A stretch of DNA of 64,000 nucleotides, from positions 8,980,998 to 9,044,997 of the forward strand of contig NC_092374.1 of NCBI RefSeq assembly GCF_030028105.1, given 5' to 3'. Source of the DNA: Mobula birostris (Eukaryota). Positions 22,140 through 62,219 of this stretch are shown piece after piece. Each line of letters begins with the position of its first letter. The first letter of the stretch is position 1. A model generated the notes under the pieces. The model made no database searches and was not told the DNA's origin. It saw only the letters and a list, made by a program, of their open reading frames with translations. Made by a program: the position numbers and the translations under genes.

Positions 22140-25100
22140 AGTTTCCCAGAGGACTGTAAAGCGCTCAATTTCTTTCTGGACAGCAAACCCAACTAGTTCC
22201 GCTCCAGCACCACTCTTCTGCATCTGGCGGAACTGCTCCTCACCCTCAACAATTTCTCCTTCGGCTCCCCCACTTCTTTCAAACCCGAGGTGTAGCCATG
22301 AGCACTTGCATGGGTCCCAGCTATCTACTGGAAGATGTTATATTTTACAAACCCATTGACTCTCACAGCTGTCTTGACTATATCTCTTCACAACCAGTCA
22401 CTTGTAAAAATACTATTCCCCTTGCTCAGTTTCTCTGTATCCACTGCATTGCACGTTGAAGCTTTACCTTCCAGAAAAACTGAGATGTCCTACGTCAAAG
22501 AAAGGGGTGTCCCTTCCTCCACCTTAAACCCGCCTTCTCTTGCATCTCTTCCATTTCATGCACATCTGCCCTCACCTCATCCCACCGTCGCCACACCGGG
22601 GATAGGGTTCCTCTTGTCCTCAGCTATCACTTCAAAAGCCTTCACATCTAGCATATCATTCTCTGTAAGGTCCACCATCGCCAACGGATCACACCACTGA
22701 GCACATCTTTCCCTCCCACCCACTTGCCGCAGAGATCAGTCCCTACACAACTCCCTTGTCCACTCGTCCCTCCCGACTGATCTGCCTTCTGGCACCTCTC
22801 CTTGCATGTATAGCAAGTGGCACACTTGCCCCTACATCTCTTCTCTCACAATCCTGCCAGGTGAAGAAATACTTCATCTGTGAGTCAGTTGGGGTCATCT
22901 ACTATTCCTGGTGCTCCCGGTGTGGCTTCCTATAAATCGCTGAGACCCAACGTAGATTAGGAGACAACTTCGCCGAACTCCTACACTCTGCCCGCAGGAA
23001 ACGTCAGGATCTCCCGGGAGCCACCCATTTCAATTCTACTTCCCAATCCCATTCCAACATGTCAGTCCATGGCCTCCCATACTAGTACGCTGAGGGCACA
23101 CTCAGGTTGGAGGAGTAACACCCTATCTCCTGTCTGGCTTACCTCTAACCTGATGGCATGAACATCGACTTCTTGAACTTCCAGCAATTGCCCCCCCCCC
23201 ACTTTCCTTCACTATTCCCCATTTTTGATCCCCTCCTGCACCTCTTCTTCTTACCTGCCCGTCAGCTCCACGTGCCTCGTGAAGACCTGGCTGATGGAGG
23301 AGATACCGGACCACGCTATCGAGCCCTTGGATTTCTCCCCGTTTCAGGTGGACAGATCAAAAAATCACTCTGGGAAAAGTAAAGTAGGTGGAGCATGCAT
23401 GGCGGTCAACAATGCTTGTGCGACCCCCAGAATGCGCATGCCCTCAAATGATTTTGATCCCCAGACCTGGAATACCCTGGTGCTGCTGTGCAGACCGTAC
23501 TGGCTGGCTAGGGAGTTCACGGCTATTATCATCAGAGCGGTGTACATTCCGCCATAGGCTGATACTGACCTGGCTCTCAAGGAACTGTACGAGACAATCA
23601 ACATGCTGGAGTGTGCACACCCAGAGGTTGCCTTCATCGTCTCTGGTGACTTTAATCAAGTGTCGCTGACGAAATTCTCTCCGAAGTTTTGTCAGCACAT
23701 CCAGGTGAGCGCACGTGGAGATAGGACACTTGACCACCGCTACGCTCCCTTCAGCAACGCTTACAAAGCTCTCCTTCGCCCAGCTTTTGGAAAATCAGAT
23801 CACTCTTCGATCCTGCTTTTGCCGATCTACAAACAGAAGCTGAAACAAGAGGCGGCCATAGTTAAAACCGTCCACTGTTGGTCCGACCAGTCGGTCTCCA
23901 AGCTGCAGGACTGCTTCGATGATGTCGACTGGAATGTCTTCTATGTTGAGATGTCCCCCAGTTCATGGATGGAGTCACGTGCCTCATGCGGAAGTGGATC
24001 GATGACGTTGTCCCCCAGAAGTCGGTCGGGGTCTTCCCGAACCAGAAACCCTGGATCAATAGTTCTGTGTGAGCAGAACTGACCGCGCGACTTAGAGCTT
24101 ACACTGCCGGCAATCAGCAGGAGCTCAAGAAAAGCAGCTACGATCTGCGCAAAGCTATCAGGGCTGCGAAACAACAATACAGGGACAAGATTAAGTCAAG
24201 ATTCACAATGAATAGCACACGGGACTTGTGCCGGGGGTTTAACATGATCGCCGACTTCAAAGCCAAACGTAGTGGTGCCTCCAACATCGCGGCCTGTCTC
24301 CCAGCTGAGCTCAATCGCTTTTACGCTCGGTTCGATGACGCTAACTCTGAGCCTCCGAGGAAAGCCGCCGCTGCAACTTGCAACCTGGTCATCTCTGAGG
24401 CTGAGGTACGCAGCTGTTTCCAACGAGTGGACAGTCGCAAGGCTGCAGGACCGGACGGCATCCCAGGGCGAGTACTCGGGATGTGAGCAGCACAACTGGC
24501 AGGTGTGTTTACAGACATTTTTAATCTCTCCCTCTCCCAGTGTCGAGTGCCCTCCTGCTTCAAAACATCCACCATTGTCCCTATACCAAAAAGACTGAAA
24601 GACCGGCGTCTTGTCACTCTCACCTTAATAATAAGCAAATACTTTGAGAGGCTGGTCAAGGACTACATCTGCAGCTTGTTACCACCCAAAATGGACCCCC
24701 TACAATTTGCCTGTCGACACAACCGACCGACAGACGACTCACTAGCCACTGCTCTACATACCGTCCTTATACATCTGGAGAAGAAGGATGCTTACGTGAG
24801 AATGCTGTTCTTGGACTACAGTTCAGCATTCAACACCATAATTCCATCCAGGCGCGACAAGAAGCTCAGAGACCTCTGCCTTCACCCTGTCTTGTGCACC
24901 TGGATCCTGGACCTCCTGTCAGATCACCGGCTCCCTCACCTCCACCCCTCTTTCACCTCAGACGGTTGAGGAAGTTTGGTATGGGCTCCCCCAAAACCCA
25001 AGAACTTTCTACAGGGGCACAATTGAGAGCATCCTGACTGGCTGCATCACTGCCTGGTATGGGAACTGTACCTCCCTTAACCGCAGGGCTCTGCAGAGAG

Positions 25101-25790
25101 TGGTGTGGACAGCCCAGCGCATCTGTAGTTGTGAACTTCCCATGATTCAGGACATTTACAAAGACAGGTGTGTAAAAAGGGCCCGAAGAATCATTGGGGA
25201 CCTGAGTCACCCCAACCACGGTCTATTCCAGCTGCTACCATCTGGGAAACGGTACCGCAGCATAAAAGCCAGCAACAACAGTCTCCGGGACAGCCTCTTC
25301 CACCAGGCCATCAGACTTATTAACTCACGCTGATTTCAGTGTATTTCTATGTTACATTGACTGTTCTATTTACTATAAATTATACATTACTATGATTGCA
25401 CACTGCATATTTAAACAGAGACGTAATATAAAAATTTTTACTCCTTTTGTATGCAAAGGATGTTAAAAATAAAGTCAATTCTAATTCTACTTCTCCCCCT
25501 GCCGTTTCTTTCATGGTCTTCGACCCTCTCCTGTCAGATTCCCCTTCTGCAGCTCTTTATCTCGTTCACCAACCAACTTCCCAGCTCTTCACTTCACCCC
25601 ATCCCTTCCTCAGGTTTCACCTATCATCGGCCACCATGTACGACTTCCATAGCTCCCCGAACTTTCTTATTCAGACTTCTTGCCCCTTCTCTTTCCAGTC
25701 CTGAGGAAGGGTCTCACCCCGAAACATCGACTGTTTATTCCCATCTATAGATGCTGCCTGATCTGCTGAGCTCCTCCAGCACTTTGTGTG
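22140..25790 (+). mobile_element. Old Penelope-like element (22140-23255 and 25480-25790) split by a Rex1-like LINE
   Basis: Degenerate RT/GIY-YIG remnants and a terminal hammerhead-bearing repeat at 25696-25790. Confidence 0.8.
23260..25475 (+). mobile_element. Rex1/Babar-like LINE with internal RT deletion
   Basis: APE RPYWLAREFT...AVYIPP, GDFN, SDH; [13 protein letters not shown]; C-terminal LPSGKRYRS. Deletion near 24930. Confidence 0.8.
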
Positions 25791-25876
25791 TTGCTATGCA
25801 TGTATCAAACTTGTTTCCATATCGATAAAAACCCACGGGGAGTGTATAGCCAATTGGATGAAAGGGGGGCAGGAAG

Positions 25877-26012
25877 NNNNNNNNNNNNNNNNNNNNNNNN
25901 NNNNNNNNNNNNNNNNNNNNNNNNNNNNNNNNNNNNNNNNNNNNNNNNNNNNNNNNNNNNNNNNNNNNNNNNNNNNNNNNNNNNNNNNNNNNNNNNNNNN
26001 NNNNNNNNNNNN
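25877..26012. other. Assembly gap (136 N) in a GA-rich simple-repeat region
   Basis: N run; the matching interval of the paralog (~62090-62226) is of similar length. Confidence 0.98.
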
Positions 26013-26491
26013 GAGAGCGACGGAGAAAGAGAGAAAGAGAGACAGCGAGAATGAGAGAGAGATAGAACGTGCATGAGTGAGATTGCGCCTGGGAGAAAGA
26101 GCAAAAGAGAGAGACAGAGCGTGAAAGAGAGAACGTGAGATAGTTGCATTTGTGACATAGATTTCAGATCAAAGGGGAATGACTATGGACCAGATCCAGT
26201 CCATCCAGAGGTAGGGCAGGAAGCTCTTCCTCTCACTGAGGTAGGTGGATTCTAGTTTCCCTTCTGTTTCTTTTTTCTGTAGTTGGACTCTCTCCACACC
26301 TGATAGGAGAATTTATAAATTGTGATGAGTGGATGTTTCCATGAGCCGTTGCATTTGTGCTCAGAACCAAGGGGCTGACAGGACGTAAAATAGATATGGG
26401 CCATCAGTATGGTGGAACTGGGTTAATGGACTGAATGGCCTCTGAAATGTCCCAGACCCAGGAAGGATGGACCACTCACTGGATTTATCAC

Positions 26492-26851
26492 CTTTCTTCA
26501 AAGACCAGGCAACAAAAACAACCAAATTAACGACTGCTAAAGTGGACACTACAATGTAGCGAGCCAGCATCAAAGCACTTGTTCTCCTCTTGGCTAGGTG
26601 GATCTCGCGGGTGTCATTTCCGTGCTGATTCGCAGCCACACAGCGGTAGCTCCCTCTCGGCCTGGGCAGTACCAGCTTTCCCACACTCTCCAGATCTCCG
26701 GTGACTCTCATCTCGCTGCTGCTCATGGGCAGTGTGCTGTTCTCAAGGTCAATCCACGTGATGTTTGCAGGGGGGTTCCCTTCAGCCTTGCACACGAGGG
26801 TGGCTCCAGTATCATCAGTCACAAGAGTTAGACTCAGGATGGTGGCCGGGA
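26492..26851 (-). CDS. Ig C2-set plus transmembrane exon, paralog A (Siglec-15-like); no upstream V exon found
   Basis: Acceptor cccccaag, donor G/gtgata, 360 nt, phase 1-1. Reads LVCKAEGNPPANITW...GSYRCVAANQHG, then TM LMLARYIVVSTLAVVNLVVFVAWSLKK. Confidence 0.85.
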
Positions 26852-29394
26852 CTTGGGGGAGGAAAGAAAATCAAATTAAATTCATTGAAATTTTGACAAT
26901 TTTTATTTTAGAAAACGTCAACTTCATTATGTGACGTGTCGCAGGACCTGGGTGATCATGGTATCATGTTCATGATTGGTCTTCACAAAGTTTTCTGCCT
27001 AGGTGCCTTCTTCTGGGAAGTGTCTTTAAAAGATGGGTGACCCCAGACATTATCAATACTGTTCAGAGATTGTCTGCTTGGTGTCATTGTTTGAATAACC
27101 AGGGTTTGTGATCTGCACCAGCTGCTTGTACGACCATCCACCACCTGCTCCAGATTTGGAGGGGGGGCTGTTAGGGTGGCTAACCAGCTTCTACACCTTG
27201 CCCGAGGGTGATCTGCAGACGAGCAGAGGGCCGGAGCTCCTTACACCTCCTTTGTAGAGACGTAATTTTAGAGATACAGCGTGGAATAGGCCATACCACC
27301 CTTCCAGCCATACCGCCCAGCAAACCCTGACAACCCCAATTTACCACAAACATAATCACAGGGCAATTAACCTACTAATTGGTACATCTTGGCCTGTGGG
27401 AAGAAACTAGAGCACCCGGAGGAACCCGCTGCATTCCACAGGGAGGACGTACATACTCCTTACGGAGGACACTGGGACTGAACTCTGAACTCCGACACAC
27501 CGAGCTGTAATAGAATCACGCAAACCACTACACTACTGTGGTAAGCTAAACTGGAGTGAGATATTCCATCAGCAATCAGACTGGATCCTGATTGTAATAG
27601 TTCCCACGGTGACCGTTCATGCTGAAGGTGGATGAAGGGTACCCAGGTCGGCTGTGGACCTTGCAACACCGCGCCAGTAATCTCAGTGGCAGAATAGGGA
27701 ACTGAAACGCCGATTCAGCAGCAGGAAGTCTCTCCTTAAGCAGGGCGTGTACTCCATGGAGTTCAGAAGAATGAGGGGATGACCTCACTGAAACCTATCA
27801 AATATTGAAAGTTTAGAAAAGAAACCAGCACTGAAATTAAACAAATAGGTACGGAACTAGAAGATATTCAAGCAATTCTAACCGAACATGATAGGAAGAT
27901 AAAGGAAAATGAAGATGTTATTACTTTACTGGTCGGGAGAATGAATGGTATGTAAAAGCTATATGAAAAACAATTTAAGACCAATGAAATGATGAGACGG
28001 AAGATTATTGATTTGGAAAACAGAAGTAGGAGGAACAATTTACGAATCCTGGCATTTAAAGAACAAACGGAAGGAGATAATCCTGAAGAATTCTTTGCAA
28101 ATCTTTTGATGGAATTATTCTCTGATATTATAAAGTCTCTGCCTTTGATTTGTCATGCTCACAGGTCACCTATCTACCAATCGGCTTCAAAATCTAAACC
28201 AAGATCAGTCTTTATATGTTTCCATGAATTTCAAATAAAGGATCGGCTGATTCGTGCTGCCCGTGGAGAAGGTATGACTGACTATCAAGATCAAAGGATA
28301 CGTATTGTTCAAGATTTTTATTCAGAAGTTATGGTAGAACGTGCTAAGTTCAAAAAAGTTATGATGGAGTTATACAGTCAAAATTTTAAAGCCTCTCTTC
28401 GTTCTCCGGCTTGACTGAGGATTACACTGGAAGACGGATCATTTAAATGGTTTTATACGAAGGAACAGGCGCAAGAATCTTTAGCCTTTAAAAGAAGTGA
28501 ATGATTGTATATATATTGAATAGACTAAAAATCTTGCAAAAGCAGAAATACTACATATTAAAAAATTATTGTTTAATATTTTTAGTATGAATAATTGTTA
28601 TTTCTGTTTCATAAACCCGTCTAAGCTTGTTTCTCACTGTATTATTTAGTCTAGATTGGAAAGTAAATAACATTGAATTCTTGGAGTGGTTCCAACAGGC
28701 TTTCTAAGAGAATGTGTTTAGAGGAAGTAGATACCGGTTGCCCTATGACCGAGTTTCTTTCTTTTGGGGGGGGGGAGGGATGGAGAGTCTTTTTTTCTTC
28801 CAGCTGATTTGGGAATTTAGTCAATTCTGTTGCTTAGTTAATATATTTCAAGGTTTATTATTTGGGTTTGATATACATTTTTCTGATTGCTATTTTAATC
28901 TTTCTTATAAAGAGCCTTAAAATGGATTGAAGTATTAATTTACTTAGTTTAAAGTAAAAGGACTAAATCACTCTGTGAAAAGAAATAAGATTTTTGCCTA
29001 TATTAAAAAACTTAAGGTACCCATTGTTATTCTTCAAGAAACACTTGTACGTAATTGTGACAATTCATGCTTTTTTATCAATGGAGAGGATCTCATTTTC
29101 ATTCTTCATTTCAGGCCAAAGCAAGAGTGGTTTCGATCCTTATAGATAATAAAGTTCCCTTTGTTCAACATAAAGTAATTTCTGATACTAATGGGCATTT
29201 TTTTATAGTATCAGGGAAACTAAATAACAAATTAATGGTATTTGCCAATGTATATGCTCCGAATATAGATCACCCAGGTTTCTTTGAGCGTTTTTGAAAT
29301 TTTTTTTGCCAGATCTAAGTCCGTACTCCTTGCTGATGGGTGGAGACTTTAATTGTTTCCTAAATCCAGTTTTAGATCGTTCATTTTAGATCTC

Positions 29395-46159: not shown

Positions 46160-46208
46160 ATGCTATTCTTTCTACTTAGCGCTATTGTCCTGGGTATCTC
46201 TGCAATGT
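46160..46208 (+). CDS. Signal-peptide (leader) exon of the Siglec-15-like gene B: MLFFLLSAIVLGISAM
   Basis: ATG at 46160, 16 mostly hydrophobic codons plus 1 nt, perfect phase-1 donor T/gtaagt. Joins the 56216 exon in frame (TCC=Ser). Confidence 0.7.
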
Positions 46209-46354
46209 GTAAGTATCTTGAAATAAAAAGCAGTGAATGGTTTTTCTGACTGTCTTATCTGTGAAAAGTGTAGGAGCTGGAATGAGTTCGGAGTGGCAAC
46301 TGAGCAGGTTCAATTATGGGTCTCATGGACACACACAGTCTTTCAGAATCTGTG

Positions 46355-50639: not shown

Positions 50640-52395
50640 CAGCAAGACAGTGGCTATATTTCATGAGGAGTTTGAGGAGATTTTGTCTGCCACCTAAGAC
50701 ACAGGAAAACTCCTACAGCTGTACCGCGGAGAGCATTGTGCCTGGCTGATCATTGTCTGGCATGGTGTGGACTGGGCACAGCGTCGAAAGAAGCTACAGA
50801 GACTTGTAAAATTAGTCAGCTCCATCTTGTGTATTGGCCTCTGTAGTATCCAAGACATCTTCAAGGAGCGGTGGGTGAGAAAGTTACGCCCATTATGAAG
50901 GACGCCCATCATCCAGGACCCGGCCTCTTCTCCATATGACCATATAACAATCACAGCACGGAAACAGGCCATCTCGCCCCTTCTAGTCCATACCGAACGC
51001 TTACTCTCATCTAGTTCCACCGACCTGCACTCAGCCCATAACACTCCATTCCTTTCCTGTCCATATAGCTATCCAATTTTACTTTAAATGACAATATCAC
51101 ACCTGCCTCAACCACTTCTGCTGGCAGCTCGTTCCACACAGCTACCACTCTCTGAGTAAAGAAGTTCCACTCATGTTACCCCTAAACTTTTGCCCCCTAT
51201 CTCTCAACTCATGTCCTCTTGTTTGAATCTCCCCTACTCTCAATGGAAAAAGCCTATCCACGTCAAATCTATCGATCCTCCTCATAATTTTAAATACTTC
51301 TATCAAGTCCCCCCTCAACCTTCTACGCTCCAAAGAATAAAGACCCAACTTGTTCAACCTTACTCTGTAACTTAGATGCTAAAATCCAGGTAACATCCCA
51401 GTAAATCTTCTCTATACTCTCTCGATTTTGTTGACATCTTTCCTATAATTCGGTGACCAGAACTGTACACAATACTCCAAATTTGGCCTTACCAATGCCT
51501 TGTACAATTTTAACATTACATCACAACTCCTATACTGAATGCTCTGATTTATAAAGGCCAGCATACCAAAAGCTTTCTTCACCACCCTATCCACATGAGT
51601 TTCCACCTTCAGGGAACTATGCACCATTATTCCTAGATCCCTCAGTTCTACTGCATTCTTCAATACCCTACCATTTACCATGTATGTCCTATTTTGATTA
51701 GTCCTACCGAAATGTAGCACCTCACATTTATCAGCATTAAACTCCATCTGCCATCTTTCAGCCCACTCTTCTAACTGGCCTAAATCTCTGTGCAAGCTTT
51801 GAAAACCTACTTCATTATCCACAACTCCACCTATCTTAGTATCATCTGCATACTTACTAATCCAATTTACCATCCTATCATCCAGATCATTAATGTATTT
51901 GACAAACAACATTGGACCCAGTACACCACAGGTCACCGGCCTCCAATCTGACAAACAGTTATCCACCACCACTCTCTGGCATCTCACATCCAGCCACTGC
52001 TGAATCCATTTTACTACTTCAATATTAATACCTAACGATTGAACCTTCCTAACTAACCTTCCATGTGGAACCTTGTCAAAGGCCTTACTGAAGTCCATAT
52101 AGACAACATCCACCACTTTACCCTCGTCAACGTTTCTAGTAACCTCTATAAAAATTCAACAAGATTTGTCAAACCTGACCTTTCACTCACAAATCTATGA
52201 TGACTGTTCCTAATCAGACCCTGTCTATCCAGATGATTATATATAACATCTCTAAGAATACTTTCCATCAATTTACCCACCACTGATGTCAAACTCAAAG
52301 GTCGATAATTGCTAGATTTATTCTTAGAACCCTTTTTAAACAATGGAACAACATAAGCAATACGCCAATCCTCCGGCACCATCCCCATTTCTCAT
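50640..52395. mobile_element. Rex1-like remnant (~50640-50935 +) and CR1 (~50940-52395 -)
   Basis: DFSKAFDKVPHGRL, YADDTK, LVRPNLEYC on the - strand. Confidence 0.85.
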
Positions 52396-52464
52396 TCTTT
52401 CTGTCAGGAAGGAGGTACAAAAGCCTGAAGGCACACACTCAGAAATTAAGGCACAGCTTTATAA

Positions 52465-55400
52465 ACCCAAATAATCTGATTTTATGAGAATCCAAATCTT
52501 TAGCCATTACAGAGAGTAGACATTGATGTTGAATTTACCTCCGAACCCGTACCCGAGAGTCATGGAGTCTTGTCTGTTATGGTACACAACTGACCATGCC
52601 AGTTTCTGGAGAGTAGACGCTCTGACTCTCCAGATTATGGCTAGCTTGCATGGCTCCTTTAAAGACTTAGGGCTGCCCTGCCAATTCGTGGCCAAGTATT
52701 GGCGCCAGGATTTTAATATTTAAAGAGAACCTGAACTGAGATTCAGTGCTCAATCATCATTTCAACTTTGGACTCTCATCTTGCATCTCGTTTCTAACCC
52801 TGTTCTTATCTCAGTCTCATATGATGTGTCGATTCTAGTCTCAGATATTCCAACACAAGGGTCCAAACCATCCTTGCCATGGTCTCTTGTCACAATCTCA
52901 CTGGGAAACTTACTCTTCACCCCATCAAGTTCATGCAAAAAAATGCACCCACTGACATTACATCTTCATTGATCTCAATTCATTTTCCTCACACTCCCCA
53001 CAATTCTCCCAGTTTCTATTTCTCACCTACACAAGGGCAGTTTAGAAAAGACAGTTAAATAACAACCCACTTCTTCTGGATTTGTGTGGAGGGTCTGAGT
53101 AGAGACACATCATTTCATCATGTTTATTCATTTCCATAGATGCTGCCTGACCTGCTGAGTTCCTCCAGCATTTTGTGAGTGTATGTCTACATCTGCTCCA
53201 CTGTGTGTAGCCATGTCTTACTGTCAGGTAATTCATTGGAGGGAGCTTCCAGGGAAGTGATGTAAATACGAGGTCTCTCTCTCACCTCAGCTTAGAGCTG
53301 TGAGAACCATGGCTCCAGTGAAGAGCTAGCATGGCACAGGCAAGGAGAACCTCCTTGGGTTCACAGCCTCCCTTGTTCTATTTCTCTGCACTTTTGATCT
53401 CTCGGAAAGTGACACTGCACAACACTGTCATAATTCAGCCCCCTTTCAACAGGGCAGAGACTCAGGGTGGGCACATAAATCACCCATGATGGAATGATGG
53501 AGCAGAGTCGATGGGCCAAATGGTCTAGTTCTGCTCCTGTGCCTTATAGTCTTAGCACAACACTGTCGAGGGGTATACTCCCTGCCACCCGACCACTCGT
53601 GTCGATTAATTTATTTGTTACATGTACATCAAAACATACAGTGAAATGTGTCATTTGCGCCAATGACTAACACAGTCGGAGGATGTGCTGGAAGCCGCTT
53701 GCACGTAAGGCGTCACTTTACAGTACCAGTGACACAGATTCAGTTCCCACTGCTGCCTGTAAGGAGTTTGTACTTTCTCCCTGTGACCACGTGGGTTTCC
53801 TCCCACAGTCCAAAGACCTGCTGGTTAGTGGGTTAGCTGGTCATTGTAAATTGCCCCATGATTAGGCTTGGATTAAATTGGCGGTTTGCTGGGTGCCATG
53901 GCTCGAAGGGCCTTTTTTCACGGTATCTCAACAAATAAATAAAAAGTAACGCCATGTCCCAGCGCCAACATGGCATGTTCATAACTCACTAACCCTAACT
54001 GGTATGGCTTTGGAGTGTGGAGGGAAACTGGAACACCCAGAGGAAACCCACAGTTTCAGGGTGTTTGAGAGACAGGGTGAATGTACAAGCTCCTGAGAGA
54101 AGGAGGCAGGAATTGAATTCTGAACACTCACACTGTGCAGCATTGTGCTAACCACTATGTCACCGTGCTGCCCTTTCAAATCTGCTCTGATGTCAGTCAG
54201 TTATACTGGGACGTGGTGAAGTGGCCAAACTGTATTGAGAGAGAAAGAGAGAACATTGGCAGGCCAGGTTCCTGTACAGATGGGAAGTGGAAAATGTTAT
54301 CTGCAGTCAGAATTCCAAAATCTTGTTGGTGTTGAAAAAAGCTTGTTCTGCTTGCAAGGATGAGAGCCAGATGGGAGATCAGTGGACAGGTGTGAAGGGA
54401 CAAGGGAGTCACGTGGGAAGTTCTCCATAACTTCCACCATCTCCAACAGGATCCAACCACCAAGCACAGCTTTCACTCCTTCCCACTTTCAGCCTTCCGC
54501 AGGATTGCTCCCTATGTGACTCCCTTGTCAATTCATCCCTCCCCACTGATCTCCCTCCTGGCACTTATCATTGCATTGAACTTGCATTGAACCCAGGGGT
54601 TCTCTCTTCACCACAGTGGCATCTTCCTCAATCAGTATTACTGTTCAGTCTGTTGTCCTTTTCTCCTTTCTGAACATCTTCCTTCCAGGAATATCGAGTG
54701 CCCAGCCCTACCATTACTGTGAAAGATGCTGGTAGTCATTGTTACATCTTGTTTTCACACAGCCATTTCTGCCTTTGACTCACCAGCCCCGCTCAAGAAC
54801 CTTCTGTCTACACTTGCTTCTCCAGTTACATCTGCCACTCCCAATTCTTTATTCATCTTCATTGTCTTTCTGTTGTCACCTGCCCAATTAGTTCAACCTT
54901 TCCCCCACCACATCAGTGACCCTCTCCCTGATACCCGCTCATCTTGCAAGGGTTTCTCCTGCCCCAAAACTGGTCCAACACCCTACAATTAGAGCAGTAA
55001 CATTTCAAGGAGCCCTCAAGTGTTCTAAAGATCTTTATGGTGGAGCAGATGAGACATAAACACAAATAATCTGATTTTATGAGAATGCAAATCTTTAAAC
55101 ATTCCAGAGAGTAGACACTGATGATAGATTTACCTCCGAACCCATACCCGAGAGTCATGGAGTCTTGTCTGTTATGGTACACAACTGACCATGCCAGTTT
55201 CTGGAGAGTAGACACTCTGACTCTCTGGATTATGGCTAGCTTGCATGGCCCCTTTAAAGACTCAGGGCTGCACTGCCAATTGGTGGCCATGTATTGACGC
55301 CAGGATTTTAATATTTAAAGAGAACCTGAACAGAGGGTCAGTGCTCAATCACTATTTCAACTTTGGATTCTCATCTTGCATCTCACTGAGAACCCTGTCC

Positions 55401-56150
55401 TTGTCTCAGCCTCATATCCTGTGTTGATTCTAGTCTCGGATACTCCAGCACAAGGGTCCAAACCATCCTTGGCATGGTCTCTCGTTACAATATTACTGGG
55501 AAACTTACTCTTCACCCCATCAAGTTCATGCGAAAAAATGCACCCACTGACATTACATCTTCATTGATCTCAATTCATTTTCCTCACATTCCCCACAATT
55601 CTCCCAGTTTCTATTTCTCACCAACACACGGGCGGTTTAGAAAAGTCAGTTAAATAACAACCCACTTCTTCTGGATTTTTGTGGAGGGTCTGAGTAGGAG
55701 AAGCATCATTTCATCATGTTTATTCATTTCCATAGATGCTGCCTGACCTGCTGAGTTCCTCCAGCATTTTATGAGTGTATGTCTACATCAGCTCCACTGT
55801 GTGTAGCCATGTCTTACTGTCAAGTAATTCATTGGAGGGAGCTTCCAGGGAAGTGATGTAAATACGAGGTCTCTCTCTCACCTCAGCTTAGAGCTGTGAG
55901 AACCATGGCTCCAGTGAAGAGCTAGCATGGCCCAGGCAAGGAGAACTTCCTTGGGTTCACAGCCTCCCTTGTTCTATTTCTCTGCGCTTTTGATCTGTTG
56001 CAGAGTGACACTGCACAACACTGTCATAATTCAGCCCCCTTTCAACAGGGCAGAGACTCAGGGTGGGCACATAAATCACCCATGATGGAATGATGGAGCA
56101 GAGTCGATGGGCCAAATGGTCTAGTTCTGCTCCTGTGCCTTATAGTCTTA
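52465..56150 (+). repeat. Local direct duplication: ~52465-53554 and ~55060-56150
   Basis: Collinear, roughly 90% identical ~1.1-kb units about 2.6 kb apart. Confidence 0.92.
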
Positions 56151-56215
56151 GGACATGGGTCCTCTAGTGTCTGTGGCCTCAGCTCAGCATTAATACCACA
56201 CCTCTGTCTTCACAG

Positions 56216-56596
56216 CCACTGATAATAATGGATGGACCATGGAAATTCCGGACAAGGTGACAGGGAGAGAAGGGAAGTCCTTGTTTCTGTTTTGCTTTTT
56301 CGCTCCCCCTTTCAATGAATACAAGGGGAACATCAGCATCATCTGGAAGAATGCGAAGGGAAACGTGACATTTTTACATTACACCAATTATCCATCAGCA
56401 CATGGGTTTGAAAATCACATTTGGAACAACAAAGACAGTCGCTACCAAATTCTGGGGAACCCACGGAAGAACGATGCTTCAATAGTCATCAAACAACTGA
56501 GGAGCAACGAGAATGGAAAGGGATTCTGTTGTCAAATTGATTTCACAGAAGAATCAACAGGAAAATGTGAAGAAGGTATTCGAACCAAAATAACAG
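56216..56596 (+). CDS. Ig V-set exon 1, Siglec-15-like
   Basis: Acceptor ctctgtcttcacag, donor G/gtgagg, 381 nt, phase 1-1. Reads GWTMEIPDKV...LFC...ISIIWK...YQILGNPRKNDASIVI...FCCQIDF. Confidence 0.88.
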
Positions 56597-59496
56597 GTGA
56601 GGAGCAGAATCATTGCATCTGAATTCTGTTGAAGTAAAGAGATCACTGACCTCCCCCATCACTCAGTGTATTCTCCACCACTCCTGAGATCTGGGTGTCA
56701 TGAGCAGGGCTGGCAGTTGTTGTCCATTCCTGTGTCTGCTCGGGTACATCAGAGGACAATAGCATGTTGGAATGCACTCACATCTGCAAAAGAGAATTTC
56801 AGAAAGAAATTGGGAGGGAGTAAAAATGGGATTTGAAATGTTGGCAGTCAGTATAAAGGACATTCCATAATGATTGACAGGTTTATTGGAAGTAAGAGAA
56901 TGGCTAAGAAATGAGAAGATTCCTTCAGGGACGTAAAGGGAAACCTGTCAGAGATGAGTTGGGTTCCATGTAAATGAAGACTTCTTATTGGTTTCCACCA
57001 GAGGGAATGACATGGAGGGTGGAGAGTTAGGGGAAGAGTACACTGAGCCTTTGGAACATGTCTCTATAAGGAAGGAGGAGATTTCACTTATATATTTTAT
57101 TTAGCGATAAGGCTCAGAACAGGCCTTTCCTGCCCAAGGAGCCACACCATCCAGCAACACACCTATTTAACACTAGCCTCATCACAGGACAATTTACAGT
57201 GACCAACTAGTGTATGAAGCAGTCTGTCTTTGGACTGTGGGAGGAAACAGGAGCCCTGAGGGAAACCCACGTGGTTCGCGGGGAGAATGTACACACCCCT
57301 TACCAATGGAGCTGGAATTGAGCTCTGAACTCTGGAACACCCCAAGCTGTAATAGCATCACGCTAACTGCTAGACCTCTATGGTGTTGGCACACATTAAC
57401 GTGAACAAATCCCCAGGGCCTGATGGGATTTTCTCAGGATGCTATGAAAAGCAAGGGAGAAGACTGAGGCTCCACATTCGTTCCTACATCTTCATGAGAA
57501 ACACCTGCAGTCCCAAACGGCAGTCGAATAGATAATGCTCTTTCTTTAAACTACACACCACTCAGCCTTACATCAGTAGTCTTGAACTGATGGGAAAAAG
57601 TTCTGAGAGACAGCATAAATGTTCACCTGGAAAGGCACGGACTGATAGACACAAGTCAACATGCTTTAGTTCAGTGGAAATGATTTGTTACAAATCCGAG
57701 TAATTTGAGCTAAGAAGGCCGATGATGGCAGGGCAGTAAACATGTTTTACATGGACTTGAGCAAAGGTCTAGAACAAGTTACAAACGCTAGTCTAGTACA
57801 GAAAGTTAGGGCAGATGGCTTCCAAAGTGTTTTTTTAAATATTTTCTCTTCAGTGATAAGCATGGTAACAGGTCCTTCTGGCTGAATAAGTCTGTTCCAC
57901 TCAGTTACACCCATGTGGCTAATTAACCTGCTAACCTGTACGTCTATGGACGGTGACTGTGGGAGGAAACTGATACCTTGGTGGAAACTCACACAGTCAT
58001 GGGGAAAACATACAAACTCCTCACAGATAGCAATGAAATTGAACCCTGGTCCCTGGCACTAATAGCATTACGCTCACCGCTACGCTCTTGTGTTTGGCAA
58101 ACTGGATCCAAACTTCACTTGTTCGGAGACAGAGTGTAGTGGCTGAGCAAAGTTTTTTGACTGCAAGTCTGTAACCAATGGTGTATCTCAGGGACCAGTG
58201 CCTGGACCACTGTTGTTTGTCATACATATTTTATATGTGATTAACTTGGATGAGAATGCAGAAGGATTGTTCAAGAAATTTACTGATCATACTAAACTAG
58301 AGGAGCAGTATGTTGTGAGGAATGTCTTGAAAGGGACATAGTTAAGTTGGAAAAATTGGCAGAGCAGTGATAGAAGAACTTAATAACTGTTAGGTAATGC
58401 ATTCTGCCCCTCGTTCTTCTCTGTCTTCCATGGTCCACTCTCCTCTCCTCGCAGATTCCTTCTTCAGCCCTTTACCTTTTCCACTTATCACCTCACTTCA
58501 TCCTCCTCCCCACTTCCACCTGGTCTCCTCTATCATCTGCTGACTTTACTCCTTCGCAGACCTGCCTTCTTATTCTGGATTCTACCCCCTTCCGTTCCAG
58601 TACTGCTGAAGGATCTTGTCCCAAAACATTGACCGTTTATCTTTTTCAATATGATGCAGCCTGACCTGCTAAGTTCCCTAGGATTTTGTGTGTGCTATTC
58701 CAGCATCGAATACAATAAAACTGTATTGTTGTTGCTCAAAGTCAACGAGATTGTGGTGCTGCTCCAGTCCGTGCAAAACACATATTTACAATGTATACAG
58801 TATGACTGATTTTTTCAAACATCCCGTACTAGTGATTTCCTTCGTCCACAATGCTCAAAGTCCATTGGCAAGTCAGGGTGAAGCATTTGTCACGTGAACA
58901 ATGGCCCTCTTCACTCACTCTCTCCCCTCCCTGGCAGAACAAGGAGTTTCTTTGCCTCTAATGCCCCTCCTCTTTCCCTTTGGAGCAAGGAGTGTATTTG
59001 CTCCCTATTTTTCCATCCTGGAGAGGATTGGATAAGACAGAGGGAATATGTCTGAAAGGGTGAGAAGGTTTTTGATGAGATCTCTGGTTGGTGAATGAAG
59101 GGAGAAAGCTGGAGGGAGAGCACAAAAAGTGGTAGATATTTGAGCTGCAAGATGCCAACCAGAGCTCCAGAGTTACCCAGTAGATCAGGCAGAGGCCGTG
59201 TAGAGTACAACTGAACCAATAGAGCAGGAGTGGCCCATCCTGATACAAACCGAGAGAACTAGTTTGCTGAGACAGTTGTATTCACGAACACTCCATCTTG
59301 TGCACACATGGCTGAGGTGCTGTTTCCCAAGATTATAATGGGCTTCGTTAGAACAGTGCACGAGCTCAGGGACAGATGAGTCAGAGTAGGAAGTAGATGA
59401 AGAATTAAACTCATTAGCAGGGATGAAATATTGTTCAATAAAATGTGGCGAATGCAATAAACTAATCCAGATTGTCCTTACATAAAGATGTCCAAG

Positions 59497-59850
59497 GTGC
59501 CAGATTATCACCAGTGACTGTAAAGGTGGGAGATTCTGCAACACTTCCCTGCAACTTCACACCTCCTGACAAGAAACCCAGTTCCATCGGTATCATCTGG
59601 ATGAAGGGGAATCTTCCAAATGTATCCATTGTCTTCAATCAGACTCGTTACCGCTCTGCCAACCGACCCTACGCCAACACTGTAAATGAGGGAGATCGAT
59701 ATGAGCTGGTGGGAAACCCAGAGCAGGGAAATGCCTCCATCAAGGTGACGGACCTCAGACTGAACGACAACAGCAAATATTTCTGTCATGTTTGGTTCAA
59801 GAATGCCAAAACAACAGTGATTCAGGATGAGACAAGCCTGCAGGTTGAGG
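59497..59850 (+). CDS. Ig V-set exon 2, Siglec-15-like; 5' boundary uncertain (59471, 59497 or 59515)
   Basis: VTVKVGDSATLPCNF...IIWMK...YELVGNPEQGNASIKVTDLRLNDNSKYFCHVWF; strong phase-1 donor G/gtgagt. Confidence 0.85.
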
Positions 59851-61248
59851 GTGAGTAAACATCTATCTCAGCATTCTGGGAACGATATAAACACATTGAA
59901 CTTTTGTCAGAAGAAATGAGCTTGCAGTGAGGAGCTGGGGCCGAGACTGGCTCAATCCCCTTGGGCTCCATTCCTAGTCCTGGGCTCCCCAACCCCCTCA
60001 CTCAGTACCGCCCCCAGTGGACAGAGACAGTGGATTCCAATCCAGGATAGGTGGAGCTTCCTGCCACAGGTTTAGAGGTTCAGACACTCATTTGGCTGCT
60101 GAATGACCAGACTGGCCTGAGCTATTTACATCTGTGTCTGGTATTAAAGACCCAGAAGCTTCTACAGACAATCACCAATCAGTTTCCACACTTAGAATTT
60201 GTCGTCATTCTCCTGATGGGTCTCTCCCATTCTTCACCTTTCCCAGAGCTGAGGGACTTTGTTCCCATGTACTCGAGAATAACGCTCCCCAAGTCACAGC
60301 CACAACCCTGGAGTTGTCCCTTGTAACTGATATTGTAATTGGAGGGATCTCCCTCTGCTCTGTCAAGGGTTTCCTGCTGTCCAATCGGCGTTTCAGTTCC
60401 CTATTCTGCCACTGAGATTACTGGCGCGGTGTTGCAAGGTCCACAGCCGACCTGGGTAACATTCATCCACCTTCAGCATGAACGGTCACCGTGGGAACCA
60501 TTACAATCAGGATCCAGTCTGCTTGCTGATGGAATATCTCACTCCAGTTTAGCTTACCACAGTAGTGTAGTGGTTTGCGTGATGCTATTACAGATTGGTG
60601 TGTCGGAGTTCAGAGTTCATGTCCAGTGTCCTCCGTAAGAGGTCTGTACGTCCTCCCTGTAGAATGCAAAGGTTTCCTCCAGGTGCCCTGGTTTTCTCCC
60701 TCGGGCCAAGATGTACTAATTAGTAGGTTAATTGTCCTGTGATTATGTTTGTGGTAAATTGGGGTTGTCAGGGTTTGCTGGGCGGTATGGCTGGAAGGGT
60801 GGAATGGCCTATTCCACACTGTATCTCTAAAATTACGTCTCTACCAAAGGGGGTGTAAGGAGCTCCGACCCTCTGCTCACCTGCAAATCACCCTCAGGCA
60901 AGGTGTAGAAGCCGGTTAGTCACCCTAACACCCCCACCCCCCAAATCTGGAGCAGGTGGTGGATGGTCGTACGAGCAGCTGGTGCAGATCACAAACCCTG
61001 GCTATTCAAACAATGACACCAAGCAGACAATCTCTGAAGAGTATTGATAATATCAGGGGTCACCCATCTTGTAAAGACACTTCCCAGAAGAAGGCACCTA
61101 GGCAGAAAACTTTGTGAAGACCAATCATGATCATGATACCATGATCACCCAGGTCCTGCGACACGTCACATAATGAAGTTGATGTTTTCTAAAATAAAAA
61201 TTGTCAAAATTTCAATGAATTTAATTTGATTTTCTTTCCTCCCCCAAG

Positions 61249-61608
61249 TCCCGGCCACCATCCTGAGTCTAACTCTTGTGACTGATGATACTGGAGCCAC
61301 TCTCGTGTGCAAGGCTGAAGGGAACCCCCCTGCAAACATCACGTGGATTGACCTTGAGAACAGCACACTGCCCATGAGCAGCAGCGAGATGAGAATCACC
61401 GGAGATCTGGAGAGTGTGGGAAAGCTGGTGCTGCCCAGGCCGAGAGGGAGCTACCGCTGTGTGGCTGCGAATCAGCACGGAAATGACACCCGCGAGATCC
61501 ACCTAGCCAAGAAGGGAACAAGTGCTTGGGTGCTGGCTCGCTACATTGTAGTGTCCACTTTGACACTCGTTCATCTGGTTGTTTTTGTTGTCTGGTTTTT
61601 GAAGAAAG
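61249..61608 (+). CDS. Ig C2-set plus transmembrane exon, paralog B
   Basis: Acceptor ttttctttcctcccccaag, donor G/gtgagc, 360 nt, phase 1-1. TM WVLARYIVVSTLTLVHLVVFVVWFLKK. Confidence 0.88.
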
Positions 61609-62219
61609 GTGAGCTGTCCAGTGATTGGTCCATTCTTCCAGGGTCTGGGACATTTCACAGAGGGGGATAGACACAGAGGCCATTCAGTCCCATAACCCAG
61701 TTCCACCATAATTGTATGATGGCCCATATCTACTTAACCTTCTGTCAGCCCCCTTTGTTCTGGGCACAAACGCATCGGCTCATTGAAATATACATTCATC
61801 GCAATTTATAAATTCTCCCATTAGATGTGGAGAAAGTCCATCTCCAAAGAAAAGAAACAAAATTTATAAGCATGTCCACTTACCTGACTGGGAGGAAGAG
61901 CTTCTTGCCCTACTTCTGGATGGACCGGGTCTGGTCTATACTAAGTCCCTTTTGATCTGAAATCTGTGTCACAAATTGAACTGTCACACTTTCTCTCTCT
62001 CAGAATTTCTCTCATTCATGCTCTGTCTCTTTTGCTCTCTCTCAGATACATTCTCTCTCTCATTTTCACTCACTCTCACTCTTCCTCGTGCTCTCACTTT
62101 CTTGCAGTCTCTCTCTCTCTTTCTCACACACTATCTCTCTGTCTCTTGCTCTCTCTCTCGGGAATGCTTTCTCATGCGTGTATTCTCTGCTACATGCACC
62201 ACATTCTCTCTCCCTTCAG

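Follow-up and report, generated by a model that had tools for sequence, protein, structure and literature searches.

The closest described system to the receptor considered here is Siglec-15, in which mutation of Arg143 to alanine abolishes sialic acid binding, with further contacts made by Trp44, Tyr87 and Tyr154 (PMC10264397, PMC7799145). Arg143, together with a lysine in the membrane helix, is described as conserved from mammals to teleosts (PMC7226832). Loss of the essential arginine is documented among primate Siglecs, where intact, expressed members, namely human Siglec-XII (R122C) and great-ape Siglec-5/14, have lost it (PMC6288428). The gene analysed here occupies the plus strand at 46.1–61.7 kb of a 64,000-nucleotide stretch of the Mobula birostris (giant manta ray) genome (contig NC_092374.1, positions 8,980,998 to 9,044,997; referred to as the window), is intact, and consists of four exons, all joined in phase 1, that encode a leader, two V-set domains (V1 and V2) and a C2-set domain with a transmembrane (TM) helix. 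It is best read, with a probability of roughly 0.7, as a Siglec-15-derived V1-V2-C2-TM receptor whose V1 lost the arginine in the stingray stem lineage, whose V2 carries an ancestral histidine at the same position, and whose recognition is likely non-sialic.

Direct reading of the V1 codons AAG GGA TTC TGT TGT CAA ATT GAT TTC places a glutamine, Gln106, after the F-strand cysteine of the V-set exon, and the V2 codons AAA TAT TTC TGT CAT GTT TGG TTC likewise place a histidine, His100, after the F-strand cysteine, confirming what the initial annotation had read at both sites. The essential F-strand arginine of the N-terminal V-set domain, which in Siglecs salt-bridges the carboxylate of sialic acid, is absent from both. 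Specifically, phmmer comparison with human Siglec-15 (PDB 7ZOZ) sets 'FCCQIDF' of V1 on 'YFCRVEF' with Gln on R143 (E 4.6e-10), and three alignments identify the second cysteine of the V1 doublet as the canonical one: the phmmer match to 7ZOZ, a MAFFT alignment in which Hemitrygon reads F-N-C-Q, and the invariant column C105 of the family alignment A2. This residue and the invariant Cys26 form the canonical B–F disulfide pair. Structurally, the AlphaFold model of V1 (predicted local distance difference test score, pLDDT, 88.5) retrieves 7ZOZ as its top Foldseek match with a template-modelling score of 0.81, the next best matches scoring 0.67–0.70, and VIA-align superposes it on 7ZOZ with Z 17.6 and a root-mean-square deviation of 1.7 Å over 118 residues, followed by sialoadhesin at Z 14.2. 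The superposed ranges, model residues 4–126 on 7ZOZ chain residues 42–163, fit Q106 = R143 and W6 = W44, so that structural alignment puts the arginine position at Gln106 and not elsewhere in the domain. The absence of the arginine, claimed earlier for both V domains, thus holds against the V domain of Siglec-15, the solved protein that both resemble most, by sequence alignment for both and by structure for V1.

The V1 core is otherwise retained, including both canonical cysteines, Trp43, Gly80 and an R-Y-x-x-x-G-N-P-R-x-N-D-A-S-I block. The Trp44 counterpart is kept as Trp6, and the counterpart of Tyr154 is Cys117. Additionally, V1 has no cysteine in the C'–C'' loop region, so the C95–C104 disulfide of Siglec-15 is absent; lungfish, coelacanth and the P0160 family have a cysteine there. 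V1 is the counterpart of the lectin (sialic-acid-binding) domain of Siglec-15.

The window gene is a member of a shark, ray, skate and chimaera family of V-V-C2 Siglec-15-like receptors, for which no description was found in the literature searched. V1-type and V2-type domains were separated with two hidden Markov models and aligned as A2 (V1, n = 29) and A3 (V2, n = 32). Arginine occupies the Arg143 position in 18/29 V1-type domains (sawfish, electric ray, skates, sharks, chimaera, lungfish, coelacanth and gar) and is, by this survey, the commonest and likely the ancestral state. Leucine is found in 6/29, within a subfamily carrying a Siglec-15-like membrane lysine, glutamine in 3/29 (the two manta copies and Hemitrygon akajei), cysteine in 1/29 (one Callorhinchus paralogue) and histidine in 1/29 (one Heptranchias protein). 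The Tyr154 position is aromatic in every arginine-bearing domain (18/18) and in the cysteine and histidine domains, and is not aromatic in the leucine and glutamine domains, the aromatic thus being missing from 9/11 domains that lack arginine. The stacking aromatic thus goes together with the arginine and is gone wherever the arginine loss looks old.

A maximum-likelihood tree resolves the glutamine-bearing domains as (Hemitrygon, (Mobula a, Mobula b)) with support of 100/99 for the clade, nested within a larger batoid clade in which the remaining members (Pristis, Narcine, Rhinoraja and Amblyraja) all have arginine. Because the glutamine is shared with Hemitrygon and the closest relatives keep arginine, the V1 change from Arg to Gln is, as far as the tree reveals, a real derived loss that happened once, before the Mobulidae/Dasyatidae split, and is fixed and old. 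A recent loss does not agree with a glutamine common to two stingray families. Across the V1 domains the tree implies four replacements of the arginine, and P0021 adds a fifth.

Several relatives in this survey show arrangements of their own. The subfamily comprising P0163, P0164, P0007, P0166, P0168 and P0165 keeps the membrane lysine (I-K-F) and looks like the closest counterpart of true Siglec-15; it has leucine at the arginine position in all sampled batoids and the basking shark, and a related Mustelus protein has arginine. Sharks also possess a 323-residue V-C2-TM Siglec-15 with arginine (P0149). The Siglec-15 models of lungfish (P0019) and gar (P0057) contain two V domains, and because both of these are V1-type with arginine they point to an independent tandem V duplication outside cartilaginous fishes.

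V2 presents a different history. Among solved structures 7ZOZ is the best single-domain sequence match for V2 as it is for V1, and phmmer sets 'YFCHVWF' of V2 on 'YFCRVEF' of human Siglec-15 with His on R143. The V2 model (pLDDT 82) adopts a generic V-set fold, with Siglec-15 at the head of the Z ranking (15.0) but level with CAR and nectin-1. V2 is 38% identical to V1 and has no counterparts of Trp44 and Tyr154. Among the V2-type domains, histidine is present in 25, leucine in 3 (from a more distant family), tyrosine in 2, cysteine in 1 and arginine in 1, and the histidine spans from Callorhinchus (both paralogues) to rays; the position two residues after it is Trp, His or Tyr in 29/32. Because the histidine is family-wide from chimaera to rays, it is, on the evidence of these alignments, the ancestral and conserved V2 state, with no loss in the manta lineage. 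The independent loss in both domains that had been proposed therefore stands for V1, where sawfish, electric ray, skates, sharks and chimaera have arginine, and not for V2; similarly, the suggested alignment of paralogues and orthologues recovers arginine-bearing copies readily in V1 and in V2 just once. On its F strand, V2 exposes a strongly conserved His-x-Trp/His that may serve as a surface for ligand binding, dimerization or packing against V1.

The single V2-type domain with arginine is P0020 of Rhincodon typus (Y-F-C-R-V-H-V), which suggests that His changed to Arg in the whale shark. CD276/B7-H3 was considered as the family of V2, having the top summed score and some RefSeq names in its favour, and was rejected, as it reaches 18–22 bits per domain versus 39 for a single Siglec-15 domain.

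The sugar pocket of V1 is further altered in Mobula, where the positions equivalent to Phe141 and Tyr154 are both cysteine (Cys104 and Cys117) in both paralogues. Hemitrygon has Asn and Asp at these positions, and the Phe141 position is varied elsewhere. A Cys104–Cys117 disulfide across the former pocket is a reasonable inference, because residues 141 and 143 point to one side of strand F, with residue 154 in the pocket on the adjacent strand G.

Together, these features suggest the following course. In the stem lineage of stingrays (Mobula and Hemitrygon), this paralogue swapped the essential arginine for glutamine and lost the sugar-stacking aromatic, and in Mobula the neighbouring F- and G-strand positions became a cysteine pair, which would staple the former pocket shut by a disulfide. 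V2 is an old internal duplicate that has carried the motif Y-F-C-H-V-W/H since before the chimaera/elasmobranch split and was probably never a canonical sialic-acid site in the cartilaginous-fish family. The resulting receptor would be devoid of canonical Arg-dependent sialic acid binding and would recognize something else, as part of a receptor pair with the putative activating copy here and the putative inhibitory copy next door.

The exons and key codons of the gene are collected in Table 1. Pfam detects V-set domains in V1 (E 2e-5) and V2 (E 6e-16) and an Ig_3/I-set domain in the third coding exon, and the leader exon is matched in tblastn by the Hemitrygon (P0161) and Pristis (P0162) leaders. 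Reading past the donor of the C2/TM exon adds a possible 20-residue tail that ends at 61670. RefSeq protein XP_072113536.1 of Mobula birostris (P0001, 'uncharacterized protein') is identical over residues 1–360 to the three coding exons of the window in phmmer, the V1 exon corresponding to residues 1–119 and the V2 exon to residues 120–240. This model is a read-through fusion in which the C2/TM exon of the window gene is joined directly to the V1 of the next downstream gene (residues 360/361), and it does not include the leader exon. Besides V1 and V2, tblastn and a six-frame motif scan found no further V exons, including arginine-bearing paralogous ones, in the 64-kb window.

Table 1. Exons and diagnostic codons of the Siglec-15-like receptor gene, numbered from the first position of the window
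Feature	Positions	Strand	Basis
Leader (signal peptide) exon	46161..46209	+	ATG at 46161; GTAAGT donor after 46209; ends in phase 1
V1 exon, Siglec-15-type N-terminal V-set, phase 1-1	56216..56596	+	Open frame, good splice sites
V1 extra Cys104 (TGT), at the Siglec-15 Phe141 position	56527..56529	+	Alignment A2; Mobula only
V1 Gln106 (CAA), at the Siglec-15 Arg143 position	56533..56535	+	Direct reading, phmmer, alignment, structure
V1 extra Cys117 (TGT), at the position of sialic-acid-contacting Tyr154	56566..56568	+	phmmer register against 7ZOZ
V2 exon, second V-set domain, phase 1-1	59488..59850	+	Open frame, good splice sites
V2 His100 (CAT), at the Siglec-15 Arg143 position	59787..59789	+	Direct reading, phmmer, family survey
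C2-set and TM exon	61249..61609	+	Pfam Ig_3/I-set; helix with Arg (L-A-R-Y) and His

Other parts of the window carry duplicated and repetitive sequence. An inverted copy at 26014–27727 (minus strand), 89% identical to 60371–62120, contains a second C2 and TM exon at about 26490–26855 that also bears the 'ARY' motif; it holds only this exon and its flanks, with no V exons upstream anywhere in the window, and represents a partial duplicate or else a gene with undetected exons. A run of 136 N (25877–26012) breaks this inverted duplicate, whose homology resumes past the run at 25579–25876 and 22343–23270. Within the long first intron, a 1.1 kb direct repeat (52461–53559 and 55056–56155, 94% identical) stops some 60 bases short of the V1 exon and includes a repeat present at very high depth in every sequencing run. 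The same intron contains a 234-residue open reading frame on the minus strand (51412–52116) with reverse-transcriptase motifs (Y-M-D-F-S-K-A-F-D-K-V-P-H), which looks like a fragment of a long interspersed nuclear element.

Two sequencing runs, compared through their assembled contigs, bear on the activity and variation of the gene. X10, a small run from Mobula birostris with RNA-like character, contains 60% of the sampled words of the V1 exon; repeat stretches aside, its contigs fall on the three coding exons (V1, V2 and C2/TM) and leave the unique parts of the introns uncovered, and one of them stops exactly at the V1 donor, 56596. This suggests that the gene is expressed, the RNA type of X10 being a guess. 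A DNA contig of a related species (X5) spans 56324–56763, and among the differences listed none falls on the Gln106 codon. Four of its V1 states (T1A, K20N, A29T and N97D) are also those of the downstream manta paralogue, a hint that gene conversion has occurred or that the contig is orthologous to that other copy. Over V2, the contig of the relative shows no change at the histidine codon among the differences listed (2/53), which is weak evidence.

The membrane helix of the window gene contains Arg and His and no Lys, so the lysine through which Siglec-15 pairs with DAP12/DAP10 is absent. The membrane lysine (I-K-F) is present in the other batoid subfamily, in coelacanth and in lungfish, and Hemitrygon P0161 shares the 'ARY' membrane motif of the window gene and has a short tail. 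The downstream paralogue is 93% identical to the window gene across V1-V2-C2 (V1 95%, V2 93%); its membrane helix is uncharged, and its long tail contains several Y-x-x-V motifs. PILR alpha and beta are paired activating and inhibitory receptors with near-identical ectodomains. The two manta genes show the genomic arrangement of such a pair, being adjacent, with near-identical ectodomains and a charged TM helix and short tail in one versus a neutral TM helix and tyrosine-motif tail in the other. From these features the window receptor looks like the activating partner of a putatively inhibitory downstream paralogue, and may pair with an adaptor through its membrane Arg.

Rather than a single derived loss in V1, the initial annotation had proposed that both V domains once bound sialic acid and lost the arginine independently in the manta lineage, by the CpG transitions CGA>CAA and CGT>CAT. 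Each codon is literally one G>A change from CGN, and the V1 arginine codon of the family is of the CGN type and hence contains a CpG; but because any CAN codon lies a single transition away from CGN, this proximity is uninformative. Moreover, the V1 arginine codon is CGT in both Pristis pectinata (L001) and Amblyraja radiata (L002), and CGT to CAA takes two substitutions, via CAT or CGA; a CpG transition may be one of these two V1 steps, and the single-step account is unsupported. For V2, which is a distant V1-type duplicate, a change from Arg to His by CGT>CAT may be very ancient, but the histidine is encoded by CAT in Mobula, Pristis and Amblyraja alike and this codon is simply inherited, the histidine is conserved from chimaera to rays, and the domain has no Trp44 or Tyr154 counterpart, which together make loss from both domains in the manta lineage very improbable. 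Decay, meaning that V1 has no function or that the gene as a whole is turning into a pseudogene, with neutral drift accounting for the absent arginine, would be in keeping with the 13 nonsynonymous and 4 synonymous changes among the X5 differences listed for the V1 exon, a near-neutral ratio, and with an exon divergence in X5 that is not below that of the adjoining intron. Such decay is also hard to credit: neither of the two Mobula copies nor Hemitrygon shows damage to the frame or the splice sites, V1 is confidently modelled and retains its core V-set residues, both paralogues share the matched new cysteine pair, and RNA-like contigs cover the V1 exon. Somewhat less remote, though still unlikely, is non-canonical binding of sialic acid or another acidic glycan by other V1 residues or by the V2 His-x-Trp/His, perhaps in a pH-dependent manner. 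V1 does keep Trp6, the V2 histidine and the residue two positions on are strongly conserved, R143A leaves some binding of Siglec-15 to certain cells (PMC7799145), and a non-canonical pocket is reported for Siglec-6 (PMC10122656). Against this stand the disappearance of the aromatic along with long-standing arginine loss, as expected of an abandoned pocket, and the fact that histidine in place of the essential arginine of a Siglec has no precedent in the literature examined.

The preferred reading, a Siglec-15-derived receptor with an old loss in V1 and an ancestral histidine in V2, has to be held against several points in addition to the residual and non-canonical binding just cited. That the window receptor lost lectin activity is what its sequence makes most likely. 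The disulfide is deduced from strand geometry only, and the loop between strands F and G is modelled at low confidence (pLDDT about 59). The codon comparison covers DNA of Mobula, Pristis and Amblyraja. The X5 ratio in V1 argues against strong purifying selection and fits relaxed and diversifying selection indistinguishably, and the contig may be orthologous to the other paralogue, its orthology being uncertain. The true 3' end of the window gene is likewise uncertain, because the RefSeq model reads through into the downstream gene, and support for the V1–V2 splice consists of that model and of a matching architecture in some 15 further species. A bolder version of the preferred reading, in which the family repeatedly gave up the V1 pocket while conserving the V2 His-x-Trp/His, a disulfide seals the manta pocket, and the two paired receptors read a non-sialic ligand through a new surface, is speculative and, taken as a whole, rather doubtful.

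The cartilaginous-fish family differs from the literature picture of a Siglec-15 whose arginine and lysine are conserved from mammals to teleosts, in that here the Siglec-15 lineage is a multi-copy V-V-C2 family whose arginine has given way to Leu, Gln, Cys or His on several occasions. Natural pairs with and without the arginine, such as sawfish versus stingray, offer a means of asking what former lectin receptors bind. If the bolder version is correct, the family would provide a natural series of conversions from lectin to protein receptor within the one Siglec lineage regarded as conserved among vertebrates.

Comparison with human and vertebrate Siglec-15 (7ZOZ; Angata et al. 2007; PMC10264397) reveals both shared and divergent features. 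Siglec-15 resembles V1 in its V-set fold, its canonical B–F disulfide, its N-terminal tryptophan (Trp44) and the motifs F-T-H-P-H-x-x-Y-x-G-N and R-Y/F-x-x-x-G-N-P-R-x-N-D, and it resembles the window gene in having a C2-set domain next and a positive charge in the membrane helix. It differs from V1 in having Arg143 where V1 has Gln, Tyr154 where V1 has Cys, and a C95–C104 loop disulfide where V1 has none. Its V-C2-TM architecture contains two immunoglobulin domains, whereas the window gene is V-V-C2-TM, as throughout the cartilaginous-fish family, and its membrane charge is a conserved Lys, whereas that of the window gene is Arg plus His. By descent the window gene belongs to the Siglec-15 lineage, and it falls outside the functional definition of a Siglec because the defining arginine is absent.

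A further parallel is provided by the IgV domain of TIM-3 (2OYP/3KAA), which like V1 has an F-strand Cys-Cys directly before a polar or basic residue (Y-C-C-R-I-Q-F versus F-C-C-Q-I-D-F) and in which extra disulfides reshape the GFC face. The match to V1 is weak (29 bits), the partner cysteine lies elsewhere, and common descent beyond the V-set fold is unsupported. The arginine-mutated primate Siglecs share with the manta family the recurrent loss of the arginine in fast-evolving, multi-copy receptors with activating and inhibitory members (PMC6288428). They are CD33-related Siglecs of another vertebrate class, whereas the manta loss is much older, is accompanied by remodelling of the pocket and falls in the Siglec-15 lineage. 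The Siglec-5/Siglec-14 and Siglec-11/16 pairs (PMC6288428) have near-identical ectodomains, as do the neighbouring manta genes, a putative pair of the same kind.

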